In this document: positions 992 through 7,582 of the stretch, in pieces
Layout of the letters: each line of letters opens with the position of its first letter
Position numbering within the stretch: position 1 is the first letter of the stretch
Assembly: GCF_006345805.1 (NCBI RefSeq)
Contig: NW_021828573.1
Coordinates: 1-7,956, forward strand
Source of the DNA: Octopus sinensis
Lineage: Eukaryota
Reading direction: 5' to 3'
DNA length: 7,956 nt
The notes under the pieces: generated by a model
Databases searched by the model: none
Told to the model about the DNA's origin: nothing
The model's input: the letters and a program-made list of their open reading frames with translations, nothing else
Position numbers and translations under genes: made by a program

Positions 992-1805
992 TCTATATAA
1001 TATATGTAGGCATCTGAAACTACTAGCGACCGTTCTACCCGACTTGCAAGGGCAGCAGCGTACAGATCTTTCCTCCGCTCGAGGTTGACGAAAGAGCAAC
1101 AGTCCAGCCAAAACATGCGGGCTTCTTCCTGTGCTTCCATCCGCAGAGCTCGCGAGAACCCCGAACAAAGGGCCATTCGGAATGCGGCTGACGCCGCTAG
1201 CACCGCCGGGACACGATCTGTCGAAACCCCACAGCAGAGGAGAACTCGCCAAGCTGCTGACGCCGCAAACACAGCCATGGCCCGATCTGCCGAAACTCCA
1301 GACCAACGAACTATTCGGACATCCAGAGATGCCATTAACACTGCTTCTGCTAGGGCTTCAGAGAGTGCTGAGGCGAGAGCTGAAAGGCTTTCAAGGGATG
1401 CCACTGCTACCGCTGACGCACGCGCATCTCAATCTGCTGAGGCACGGCGCACTCGACTTGAGAGTATCAACCAACGTCGGGATATCATTCGGTTGGGGTG
1501 TCAAAAGGGCAGGCATGTGCAACCTTATCACCTCTGCCTATCAAACTCCCAACCCATGCGTTCCCGTCGCGACACTGATCCCGCAGAACTGGGTTGGGTG
1601 TGATAAACAAAACCAGAAAATGCACTTTGACTGTCATAGATTTCTTCGTGCATGCAAGGGAACGGTGCCTGAATGCCTTAATGCCTTTTAGGCTTCATTT
1701 ACCAAAATAAACGGTTCAGTGAGTACAAAAAAGGGTAAAAAGGTAAAGGGCATGCTTATCGACAAAGTTTCTTACATACCAGGGCAACGCCGGGCTATGC
1801 TGTAG
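992..1805 (+). mobile_element. Putative non-autonomous (internally deleted) Helitron
   Basis: Candidate 5' end A|TCTATATAATA at 991/992. The 3' end has the GC-rich imperfect hairpin CCAGGGCAACGCCGGG (1779-1794) followed 11 nt later by ...CTGTAG|T (1800-1806), close to the canonical CCGGGCAACGCCGGG...CTAG|T animal Helitron terminus, but the terminal CTAG is degenerate. A|T insertion site, no TSD. Contains 23-aa repeats of a type seen at RepHel N-termini. The 5' boundary is uncertain because it abuts a TA microsatellite. Confidence 0.6.
1010..1603 (+). CDS. STPR-like (23-aa tandem repeat) DNA-binding-type coding segment; probably a Helitron RepHel N-terminal remnant or captured exon
   Basis: The frame is open from 1010 to TGA at 1601-1603. 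Seven units start exactly 69 nt apart: ETTSDRSTRLARAAAYRSFLRSR (1016), LTKEQQSSQNMRASSCASIRRAR (1085), ENPEQRAIRNAADAASTAGTRSV (1154), ETPQQRRTRQAADAANTAMARSA (1223), ETPDQRTIRTSRDAINTASARAS (1292), ESAEARAERLSRDATATADARAS (1361), QSAEARRTRLESINQRRDIIRLG (1430). DNA periodicity is visible (GCTGACGCCGC at 1187 and 1256). The E-T/S-x-E/D-x-R-x-x-R pattern matches STPR repeats such as FMBP-1 ETSEERAARL. Confidence 0.7.
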   Translation, partial: ASETTSDRSTRLARAAAYRSFLRSRLTKEQQSSQNMRASSCASIRRARENPEQRAIRNAADAASTAGTRSVETPQQRRTRQAADAANTAMARSAETPDQRTIRTSRDAINTASARASESAEARAERLSRDATATADARASQSAEARRTRLESINQRRDIIRLGCQKGRHVQPYHLCLSNSQPMRSRRDTDPAELGWV

Positions 1806-3151: not shown

Positions 3152-3540
<389 letters not shown>

Positions 3541-4232: not shown

Positions 4233-4907
4233 TTATAACATTGTATTTTACCTTTTTTGCGTCCACTTAATTTTAAATTTAATTTAATTGAGAGAACAAA
4301 ATTGTTGGAATAAAAATGGCAAATTAAGGAATTTTTTGCGTTCCTTGAGGCATGGAATCTTGAAGAGAATAGGATATAAATGCGAAATACTTTGAAAAAC
4401 CGAGCTCGATTGCTGGAACTAAGAGAAAGAAAACTGAACTTCGTTTTTTCTTTTTTTCTTATTCCTTTTTTTCAGTATGTTGCTGTCGTAATTTCTCTTT
4501 GGAATTCTTAGAAAAATATTGGATTGGAATATTGATAGGACGAAATCAAGTCGCAAGGAAATACATTCAAACACTACTTCTTCAAGCAATGTAACGGAGA
4601 ACGACAGAAAGGGAGACAACTCATATGCACACATACAGCTACCCAACTCCACGACCACCATGACAAACATTGGCAGAGGAGGTAAAAAATATAAACAGGT
4701 ACCTAAATGACGAACATAGAATCATCGAAGGAAGGAAAGGAATTAAATCTGATAAAAACGAGACAACAGAGTATTAGAAATCATAAAGCAGCCATAGAGT
4801 TAGTCAAAATCTTAAAGAGAAAAGTGCGACGACAGTGGACTCAATTCATAAATCCTGTGTGTATTACCTAAAAGGGTATCTGTGCACTTGGAGAATATCG
4901 GATATAC

Positions 4908-5142
4908 CTATTTCTTTACTGACCACAAAGGGCTAAACACAGAGGGGGCAAACAAGGACAGACAAACGGATTAAGCCGATTATATCGACCCCAGTGCGTA
5001 ACTAGTACTTATTTAATCGACCCCGAAAGGATGAAAGGCAAAGTCGACCTCGGCGGAATTTGAACTCAGAACGAAGCGGCAGACGAAATACGGCTACGCA
5101 TTTCGCCCGGCGTGCTAACGTTTCTGCCAGCTCGCCGCCTTA
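4908..5142 (-). mobile_element. Full-length tRNA-derived SINE with 17-bp TSD
   Basis: The minus strand starts TAAGGCGGCGAGCTGGCAGAAACG (A box, + coords 5119-5129) and has GAGTTCAAATTCC (B box, 5055-5067). The central GAGGTCGACTTTGCCTTTCATCCTTTCGGGGTCGAT..AAGTAC resembles the Meta-type SINE central domain as I recall it. Ends ...AGTAAAGAAATAG. Flanked by exact direct repeats GAGAATATCGGATATAC (4891-4907, 5143-5159). Second copy at 7068-7267. Confidence 0.92.
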
Positions 5143-5181
5143 GAGAATATCGGATATACGGTCGTTATGTCGCTGCCGCTG

Positions 5182-6009: not shown

Positions 6010-6621
6010 CAGTTGCGGCCAAAATGTTCAGAACGGCATTGTTTTCGTCAGAAAAGTAAGTATAAGTTTTTATCAAAGTTTTTTTATATTCTATAATTTT
6101 CACAGACAATAAATACAATACTATTTGTTATTGTATGAGATGCTGGTGTAATTTGAGAGGATAATACAAAAGTTATGGATGATTTAGTGATTTACTGCAA
6201 AACCCATGGCGGCCAAAATGATCAGAACGGTTGAAAAAATAACAAAATAATCAAAAATGACAGAGAATACTGGAATTATTCAATATTTAGTGTGAAGCCC
6301 TTATTTTTTTCAATCACACTTTGACATCTTCGACTGCATGAGGAAATTAAACTTTCAATTTCTTGCTGGTGATCTTATTCCATTCTTCCTGAAGGGCATT
6401 CCATAATTGCTCGGTTGTTTTAGGATTTGTCTTTTCTGTCTGCTTCGAACGTTCTCCTAGAATATTCCACACATTTTCAATAGGATTGAGATCTGGGCTT
6501 TGAGCAGGCCAATCCATAACAATAACCTTTTCAGCCTTGAGGAAGTTCATGACCACCTTAGCCTTGTGACATGGGGCATTGTCCTGCATGAATATGGGTG
6601 GTCGCTTAGTTGAATTTCTAG
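6010..6621 (-). mobile_element. Tc1-family DNA transposon, 3' (right) end only
   Basis: TA (6008-6009) then CAGTTGCGGCCAAAATG, a typical Tc1 terminus. Internal direct repeat at 6209-6230. Transposase C-terminus on the minus strand. No matching opposite TIR in the window. Confidence 0.92.
6280..6621 (-). pseudogene. Tc1 D34E transposase C-terminal remnant (frameshifted)
   Basis: RNSTKRPPIFMQDNAPCHKAKVVMNFLKAEKVIVMDWPAQSPDLNPIENVW...: 34 residues lie between the D of QDN and the E of PIEN. After a frameshift near 6360 it reads IESLISSCSRRCQSVIE, and after a second shift GLHTKY* (stop at 6280-6282). Confidence 0.95.
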
Positions 6622-6838: not shown

Positions 6839-6906
<68 letters not shown>

Positions 6907-7007
6907 TACGACGTGCTTCTTCGTCAGTTTCCGTCTACCAAATCCATTCACAAGGCTTTGGTCGGCTCGAGGCTATAGTAGAAGACACTTGCCCAAGGTC
7001 CCACGCA
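6781..7007 (-). mobile_element. Fragment of a CORE-like SINE with an internal (TA)/(TG) microsatellite
   Basis: The minus strand reads TGCGTGGGACCTTGGGCAAGTGTCTTCTACTATAGCCTCGAGCCGACCAAAGCCTTGTGAATGGATTTGGTAGACGGAAACTGACGAAGAAGCACGTCGTA-(TA)n-...TGTTTGTCCCCACAACGTCGCTTGACAA. ACCTTGGGCAAGT matches the CORE-SINE motif. The rest matches my recollection of an abundant octopus repeat. The tRNA head is missing. Confidence 0.7.
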
Positions 7008-7067: not shown

Positions 7068-7267
7068 CACAAGGCCAACAATTTTGAGGAGGGGCTAAGT
7101 CGATTACATCGACCCCCAGTGCTCAACTGGTACTTATGTTATCGACCCCGAAGGTATGAAAGGCAAAGTCGACCTAGACGGAATTTGAACTCAGAACGTA
7201 AAGTTATACGAAATGCCGCGAAGCTCTTTGTCCGGCGTGCTAACGATTCTACCAGCTCGCCGCATTA
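7068..7267 (-). mobile_element. tRNA-derived SINE, second copy of the 4908-5142 family with a different 3' tail
   Basis: About 82% identical by hand alignment (~31 differences over ~176 nt) to 4967-5142. B box GAGTTCAAATTCC intact. Beyond the shared AATCG(A/G)CTTA the tail is GCCCCTCCTCAAAATTGTTGGCCTTGTG. No TSD found. Confidence 0.9.
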
Positions 7268-7522
7268 CTATGCCTGAGTATTAATCGATGTGATGGTCAC
7301 AGCTGGAGCACATTTGATTATTGCTCATTGATCTGCAGGATCAGGAATGACACAGGGCGAAACAACAACAAAATTTTTATAAAATGATATCAATAATTTT
7401 TATCGATTTTCTTTTCGATCATATTAAACTAATTAAGAACCTTAATGGATTGATAGATTAATCCACTCTAATGAACTAATTTACACTGATAAACTGTACT
7501 GCCACCTGGGTTACTGTGACTT

Positions 7523-7582
<60 letters not shown>
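7523..7582. repeat. (GTA)20 trinucleotide repeat
   Basis: Perfect 60-nt run; gives the poly-Thr in ORF 7468-7803. Confidence 0.98.

Follow-up and report, generated by a model that had tools for sequence, protein, structure and literature searches.

The GC-rich island and its repeat array

The window, that is, the whole 7,956-nucleotide stretch of Octopus sinensis DNA that was analysed (contig NW_021828573.1), is AT-rich eukaryotic DNA, rich in TA, GT, GATA and GTA microsatellites. It contains an island in which the GC content is 0.55-0.61 over positions 1001-1600, against 0.12-0.18 in the left flank. An earlier note on this DNA, made from the letters alone, had described a GC-rich island of ~810 bp embedded in TA DNA, and the contrast in composition is indeed clear, the TA flank on the right side being only ~18 nt long. 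The features considered here are the following.

830-991, no strand: TA-rich microsatellite forming the left flank of the island (the tract itself spans ~830-1009)
992-1009, plus strand: candidate 5' boundary, TCTATATAATATATGTAG following A991, resembling the Sepia 5' end A/TCTATAAATGGCA
1010-1603, plus strand: open frame of 197 sense codons, remnant of a Helitron RepHel N-terminus according to profile and tblastn matches
1016-1498, plus strand: seven 23-residue STPR units in the FMBP-1 register (Pfam PF21107, PDB 5d23_A, lag-23 periodicity)
1499-1778, plus strand: internal segment with the tail of the open frame and non-coding DNA, AATAAA at 1706-1711
1779-1805, plus strand: conserved Helitron 3' terminus CCAGGGCAACGCCGGGCTATGCTGTAG, common to five Helitron copies
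1806-1822, no strand: short TA-rich right flank TATAATATATATATGTA, ~18 nt

A MITE-like inverted-repeat element (1823-2182) follows directly after the right TA-rich flank, and scanning the window for Rfam families and tRNAs gave no hits. The window also carries SINE copies at 4901-5160 and 7068-7270, for which numerous counterparts with 76-92% identity were found in loci of O. bimaculoides, O. sinensis and O. vulgaris and not one in the loci of Sepia, and this marks the DNA as octopod.

The repeat units are located at 1016-1084, 1085-1153, 1154-1222, 1223-1291, 1292-1360, 1361-1429 and 1430-1498. Their register was set by gapless alignment to the STPR domain of FMBP-1 (PDB 5d23_A), which is the sole PDB match (E=0.0013); the register 1010-1492 given in the earlier note corresponds to the same array, two codons off. 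Comparing the protein with itself 23 residues further on gives an identity of 0.428, against 0.122 +/- 0.027 in shuffled sequences, and none of 5000 shuffles reached 0.428, while the best lag of the DNA is 69 (identity 0.483). The seven 23-residue units in a 69-nt register that the note had read from the sequence are thus confirmed by the periodicity of both protein and DNA, as is the divergence that it had reported between them, since unit-to-unit identity is 35-65% in DNA and 13-61% in protein. The repeat is clear in units 3-6 (39-61% mutual protein identity), moderately so in unit 1 and degenerate in units 2 and 7; this divergence is the reason why the array is missing from the output of Tandem Repeats Finder. 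The assignment of the repeats to STPR, also made in the note, agrees with the match to the Pfam family PF21107 (STPRs; E=5.5e-11, 43.2 bits against a cutoff of 27) as well as with that to FMBP-1.

STPR proteins share Glu1, Thr/Ser2 and Arg9 (PMC4856987). In the array all three are kept in units 1, 4, 5 and 6, and two of the three in units 3 and 7, with Arg6 kept in six of the seven units. The STPR domain of FMBP-1, which favours AT-rich DNA and was crystallized on (atac)4, lays short alpha-helices in a zig-zag along a widened AT-rich major groove, at ~4 bp per helix, and contacts the DNA through Arg6, Arg9, Leu10, Met13, Ser14, Tyr16, Ala17, Arg20 and Leu21 (PMC4856987). Among these residues, Leu10 is retained by units 1, 6 and 7 and Tyr16 remains in unit 1 only; position 13 is Asp in units 3-6, and Arg is found at position 21, not 20, in units 1 and 3-7, Arg20 occurring in unit 2 only. 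The arrays of cuttlefish Helitrons display the same contact-residue pattern (SRDAAATA), which points to a divergent STPR subfamily. Moreover, the unit consensus, ET..QR..R..RDAA.TA.AR, is that of the cephalopod Helitron subfamily and not that of FMBP-1 or ZNF821. By analogy with FMBP-1, the STPR variant of the window would be expected to bind DNA.

The frame containing the array (1010-1603) is immediately preceded by a TAG at 1007-1009 and ended by two stops, at 1604-1606 and 1607-1609. No indel interrupts the array and no stop interrupts the 197 codons, as the note had stated for the seven units, and a start codon is missing from the head of the frame, the first ATG being found only at 1115. 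The proportion of dinucleotide-preserving shuffles that are stop-free in this frame is 0.25%; frame +2 likewise has one stop only, which indicates that composition helps to hold several frames open. Two other long frames, at 1131-1688 on the plus strand and 955-1404 on the minus strand, gave zero Pfam matches.

Homology to the N-termini of Helitron RepHel proteins

An exhaustive phmmer search over 1.84 billion representatives returned 90 proteins (best E 3.7e-19), none of them above 49% identity. The domains found among them were STPRs (53), Helitron_like_N (8), DUF6570 (8) and PIF1 (3), and in at least 15 of the 90 the Helitron motif C..C.A..W..E..CC..GKV stands straight after the repeats. 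The order is well illustrated by P0097 (O. bimaculoides LOC106872177), where the STPR units are followed by the zinc-finger-like motif and then by Helitron_like_N, and P0002 and P0007 combine STPRs, Helitron_like_N and PIF1. STPRs is a domain almost exclusive to canonical (HLE1) Helitrons according to the HELIANO paper (PMC11417382), so that the earlier note was right in placing such arrays N-terminal to Rep in animal Helitrons. When the ORF was used in a word-indexed protein search it yielded zero relatives, no close relative turned up among 15 billion predicted proteins or metagenome contigs, and two versions of the ORF were absent from the protein collection by exact look-up.

The nearest collinear relatives are fragments from Acanthosepion (Sepia) pharaonis, several of which are named in the source as 'Helitron helicase-like domain-containing'. 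Besides the repeats they have in common with the frame a non-repeat signature, RLARAAAYRSFLRSRL in the window and CLAGKAAYRALLRSRL in P0019. Twelve cephalopod relatives were combined into a family profile of 451 nodes, which gives E=2e-29 with the window, through nodes 14-174 of 451 only, corresponding to 986-1477, with no further match outside those nodes in the six frames of the window. In tblastn the frame aligns to residues 15-212 of P0093 and 15-116 of P0019. Judged by these alignments, cephalopod RepHel proteins and the frame are collinear over the N-terminal ~160 residues of the former. The head of the frame corresponds to residue 15 of both P0019 and P0093, the Met and ~14 codons being absent relative to them; relative to P0094, the fullest Sepia N-terminus, ~46 N-terminal codons are absent. 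P0094 and the octopus copies open with MPPK(R/K)R and carry two extra STPR-like units upstream.

Nothing else of a RepHel protein was detected in the window. Neither tblastn nor the profile found Rep (Helitron_like_N) sequence in the six frames of the whole window, the PIF1-bearing proteins P0002, P0007, P0107 and P0122 gave no Pif1 helicase match in tblastn, and the zinc-finger-like Helitron motif occurs nowhere in it. The lack of Rep and Pif1 that the note had reported therefore extends to the window in full. All 134 fetched proteins, used as tblastn queries, gave no credible match outside the array, the others having E>0.05; a weak match at 4523-4591 (E 0.08-0.7), obtained with closely related Sepia proteins only, was treated as chance. 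Searches by tblastn, profile and blastn related segment 1499-1778 neither to Rep or helicase nor to any of the fetched elements.

STPR arrays are also found together with C2H2 fingers (P0004) and with THAP (P0017), and the island could accordingly be viewed as a fragment of a host gene of the ZNF821/FMBP-1 type that lies next to a Helitron-like end by chance. The non-repeat N-terminal signature and the unit consensus nevertheless fit the cephalopod Helitron subfamily, and a Helitron 3' terminus is placed on the same strand, ~200 nt downstream of the stop codon of the frame. The host-gene origin is largely refuted by these features and we give it hardly any credence.

A gene or exon reduced to the STPR array, domesticated and expressed as a binder of AT-rich DNA or as a competitor of the Helitron transposase, would account for a frame that is open and whose product is net basic (37 R+K against 22 D+E), with Glu1, Thr/Ser2 and Arg9 kept in most units. 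It could be read as a terminal exon at 1010-1603, with the AG at 1008-1009 immediately before the frame as acceptor and the AATAAA at 1706-1711 after it as poly(A) signal, and short STPR-bearing Helitron fragments have been annotated as genes in O. vulgaris and Sepia. Yet the frame does not open with a start codon, there is no orthologue or paralogue above 49% identity in the searched databases, and most of the DNA-contact residues of FMBP-1 have been replaced, with Tyr16 in unit 1 only and Met13 changed to Asp in units 3-6. Sequences as short as these splice and poly(A) signals are expected to occur by chance, and the proteins with STPR only that have been annotated in O. vulgaris and Sepia are decayed pieces of Helitrons. 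The STPR-only protein P0028 of O. vulgaris (locus L008) was considered in this respect and set aside; it represents a piece of a Helitron, its locus contains no 3' motif at up to 2 mismatches, and it therefore lends no support to a class of STPR-only genes. Both the STPR-only gene and, within it, the exon with these particular signals appear very improbable. The functions that the note had contemplated, namely dispersal of STPR exons, competition with or regulation of autonomous Helitrons, and a domesticated binder, found no support, the frame having no start codon and no close homologue in the protein and metagenome searches.

The two ends of the island

The right end of the island was defined by comparison with cephalopod Helitrons. 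Three Sepia copies (L001, L003 and L004) have ~3.8 kb in common, with ~89% identity, and their homology stops at CCCCGAGCAACGCCGGGCTTTACTGCTAG, directly before a T. The 3' end of the relatives consists of CCCCGAGCAACGCCGGGC, four variable nucleotides and CTGCTAG, followed by a host T; in a form meant as a search pattern it reads CGCCGGGC, four variable nucleotides and CTGCTAG. This motif closes two L003 elements, L004, L005 (O. bimaculoides) and L007 (O. sinensis), and in the latter two it is found where the homology between copies stops, in the same orientation as the RepHel frame. The window carries the sole such site at the island end, CCAGGGCAACGCCGGGCTATGCTGTAG at 1779-1805, comprising a degraded short palindrome (1779-1796) and CTGTAG (1800-1805) followed by the host T; GGGCAACGCCGGG and CTGTAG together are located at 1781-1805. 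The site is on the same strand as the STPR frame, ~200 nt past its stop codon. Alignment of the window with five relatives leaves 17 invariant columns in the last 30 nt. When region 940-1830 was compared with the five elements by sensitive blastn, the alignments were confined to the STPR region, where they were weak, and to the final 27 nt. Position 1805 is, on this sequence comparison, a genuine conserved Helitron 3' end, and because 1779-1805 matches the ends of five cephalopod Helitrons the boundary that the earlier note had set near 1805 is correct. A look-alike of the terminus at ~1197-1223, inside the island, was judged to be chance.

The terminus of the window has changed with respect to its relatives, since its palindrome has two substitutions and CTGCTAG has been reduced by one nucleotide to CTGTAG. 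The hairpin folds at -3.6 kcal/mol (z=+1.27), and 184 of 200 shuffles fold at least as well; as a thermodynamic feature of this copy the hairpin was consequently rejected, being no more stable than shuffles. The terminal hairpin and degenerate CTAG end described in the note hence stand in part. The hairpin motif is present and conserved in sequence, and the end is homologous to those of the relatives and followed by the host T, but the fold is no better than in shuffles and the decay of CTGCTAG to CTGTAG has broken the CTRR.

The left end is of a different quality. The note had pointed to a TC after A at 992, and an A/TC is present at 991/992, the only ATC in 210 nt upstream; a second one lies at 1012/1013. 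The sequence TCTATATAAT at the candidate end resembles the Sepia 5' end TCTATAAAT in its TA-rich context, whereas the candidate as a whole, TCTATATAATATATGTAG, is not distinguishable from the TA-rich flank. Between 992 and the frame there are only 18 nt, TA-rich in composition, which overlap with a tandem duplication of 21 nt (975-1015). The 18-nt Sepia 5' terminus was found nowhere within 3 edits in the window or in the octopus loci, and 5' ends of octopus Helitrons could not be fixed from the two copies compared. In the Sepia family ~1.6 kb separate the 5' end from the annotated ATG. A frame without a start codon and without ~14-46 N-terminal codons, beginning mid-protein 18 nt further on, does not support a 5' terminus at 992. 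Two histories are possible: the 5' part may have been lost, perhaps to the microsatellite, or two deletions may have left a short 5' stub, the resulting mini-element then being inserted into (TA)n.

These ends bear directly on whether the ~810 bp from 992 to 1805 constitute an intact and mobilisable non-autonomous mini-Helitron, multi-copy, placed in (TA)n and moved in trans by an autonomous octopus Helitron. The 3' terminus at 1805 is real, the A/TC at 991/992 is followed by a sequence comparable with the Sepia 5' end, TA-rich DNA lies on both sides, and the 3' ends of the family are significantly associated with TA tracts; furthermore, O. vulgaris has annotated Helitron families, eight of which were classed as recently active (PMC13282606). 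The frame, however, begins mid-protein just 18 TA-rich nt past the supposed 5' end, in contrast to the ~1.6 kb of the Sepia relatives, and both the palindrome and the CTRR are damaged. The ~185 kb of octopus DNA that were fetched contain nothing similar, which sets a weak bound only, and no close ORF was found among the 15 billion proteins or the metagenome contigs. An intact mini-Helitron is for these reasons an unlikely interpretation of the island.

Origin of the island and comparison with known Helitrons

Taking into account the STPR identity of the repeats, their collinear homology to Helitron N-termini, the absence of Rep and helicase and the conserved 3' end, we consider it probable that the island descends from a canonical (HLE1-type) Helitron by internal deletion and is most likely dead; the history of deletion, the role of the STPR array in the parent and the inactivity of the copy are what we infer from them. 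According to this proposal, the remnant would keep ~160 N-terminal RepHel codons, equivalent to seven of at least nine STPR units, having lost the first 14-46 codons together with the Met and the MPPK(R/K)R start. Past a large internal deletion, whose junction would lie near 1495, segment 1499-1778 is probably the 3' subterminal non-coding region of the parent, so that ~280 bp of it would be retained along with the genuine, now mutated, 3' terminus. The zinc-finger-like motif, the Rep nuclease and the Pif1 helicase, which take up 4-5 kb in full-length relatives, would have been removed. In the parent, the STPR array may have acted as in FMBP-1, providing the transposase with an accessory grip on AT-rich DNA.

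Decay is apparent in the two substitutions of the palindrome, the 1-nt deletion in CTGCTAG, the weak folds and the lack of a start codon. The absence of any stop or frameshift over 197 codons was counted against a dead remnant, as it could reflect recent origin or selection. The frame may stay open through its GC-rich and Ala/Arg-rich composition, or the remnant may be fairly young; as a relic, the frame is not expected to give a protein product.

The flanks of the family's 3' ends suggest a further role for the array. Four of six cephalopod Helitron 3' ends are directly followed by a TA-rich microsatellite, and a fifth nearly so, against a background in which 1.6% of 16-nt windows are equally TA-rich (259 kb examined); the right flank of the island, TATAATATATATATGTA, resembles the TA-rich flanks of other cephalopod Helitron 3' ends. 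Combined with the preference of FMBP-1 for AT-rich DNA, this strong association raises a testable idea on the choice of target, that the STPR array of the family guides insertion. In its fullest form, the array of cephalopod Helitrons would direct insertion to AT-rich repeats such as (TA)n and (ATAC)n through their shape, and the mini-element would have arisen by transposition as a derivative with STPR alone, whose product might compete for such sites. The evidence for this version consists only of the flank association of the 3' ends, and we regard it as a distant prospect, slightly less remote than the STPR-only gene.

Deletion derivatives of Helitrons are common, and the island in itself matters little. 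The literature already describes STPR arrays of canonical Helitrons (PMC11417382) as well as Helitron families of Octopus (PMC13282606). Of wider use is the sequence-level 3' terminus common to cuttlefish and octopus Helitrons, CCCCGAGCAACGCCGGGC with four variable nucleotides and CTGCTAG, which can serve as an aid to annotation.

The properties of the island are best appreciated in relation to three known systems. Like FMBP-1 of Bombyx mori (PDB 5d23, 5d2q, 5d2s) and human ZNF821, the array has a strict 23-residue period and keeps Glu1, Thr/Ser2, Arg6 and Arg9 in most units. It differs from FMBP-1 in having seven units instead of four and in that the contacts Leu10, Met13, Tyr16 and Arg20 are mostly replaced, with Asp at 13 and the Arg moved to 21.

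The cephalopod HLE1 RepHel elements used for comparison were those of O. bimaculoides (LOC106872177, locus L005, ~9789-15474), the O. sinensis copy in L007 and those of Acanthosepion pharaonis (L001, L003, L004). These elements share with the window an N-terminal STPR array with the same unit consensus, the type of 3' terminus and the TA-rich 3' flank, and the Sepia family shares in addition the N-terminal non-repeat signature. The island differs from them in lacking the zinc-finger-like motif, Rep, Pif1 and a start codon, and in its size of ~0.8 kb, against ~3.8 kb in the Sepia copies and ~5.7 kb in the octopus copies. Since its protein identity to them is only 36-46%, the island would belong to a different subfamily, of which no autonomous parent was found. 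The third system is that of the non-autonomous Helitrons. Those that can be mobilised typically keep both termini, whereas in the window the 5' end is only a candidate and the signals at the 3' end are mutated. With non-autonomous Helitrons in general the island nonetheless has in common the retention of a terminal signal after the enzyme domains of the transposase have disappeared, as well as the AT-rich setting and the host T that follows the 3' end.

TA-rich flanks of the Helitron 3′ ends

The end of the GC-rich Helitron remnant (the island) was compared with five other cephalopod Helitron 3′ ends:

window 1805, end of the island
L003 (Acanthosepion pharaonis, two elements), 3612 and 12252
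L004 (A. pharaonis), 12288
L005 (Octopus bimaculoides), 15474
L007 (O. sinensis), 14854

TA-rich microsatellite directly follows four of the six and nearly does so at a fifth, whereas equally TA-rich 16-nt windows make up only 1.6% of the background (259 kb examined). This excess suggests either that (TA)n is preferred as a target or that the microsatellite has grown out from the 3′ end.

The 3′ terminal motif consists of GCAACGCCGGGC, 4-6 nt and CTGTAG. A similar sequence, GCACCGCCGGGACACGATCTGTCG, is found within the third STPR unit at about 1197-1223, and is probably a chance resemblance in GC-rich coding DNA.

Repeats around the island

The remainder of the window carries the following features:

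1823-2182, MITE-like element, immediately after the island
3160-3540, long (GATA)n array of ~380 nt with interspersed variants
4901-5160 and 7068-7270, SINE-like repeat in two copies
6350-6589, minus strand, Tc1/mariner-type transposase fragment (Pfam DDE_3, E=6.4e-12)
6882-7007, additional short repeat
7520-7580, (GTA)n array of ~60 nt

The MITE-like element has terminal inverted repeats of 34 nt, 88% complementary and separated by 292 nt, and contains a 24-nt inner palindrome at 2111-2161; no further copies of it were found in the octopus loci compared. The Tc1/mariner-type fragment is limited to the C-terminal portion of the catalytic domain. Over 154 nt the two SINE-like copies share 83% identity. 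Like the additional short repeat, they have many matches (76-92%) in loci of O. bimaculoides, O. sinensis and O. vulgaris; these matches identify the window as octopod DNA.

On the same strand as the island and 2.7 kb downstream of it, positions 4523-4591 (+) gave a tblastn match of 52-57% over 23 amino acids to the Rep-proximal segment IGIL..GRVPRRD.ILLLQAM of several Sepia Helitron proteins. The match is weak (E 0.08-0.7), its partners are closely related to one another, and it was taken as chance despite this position.

Truncated or deleted Helitrons in Sepia pharaonis

Three copies from this cuttlefish were delimited:

L001, ~8413-11620
L003, 8429-12253
L004, ~8321-12288

They are themselves truncated or deleted Helitrons of ~3.8 kb, stopping inside the Rep region and nonetheless possessing the 3′ terminus. 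The non-coding DNA at their 5′ end extends for ~1.6 kb and contains internal tandem repeats, and these copies are annotated as protein-coding genes.
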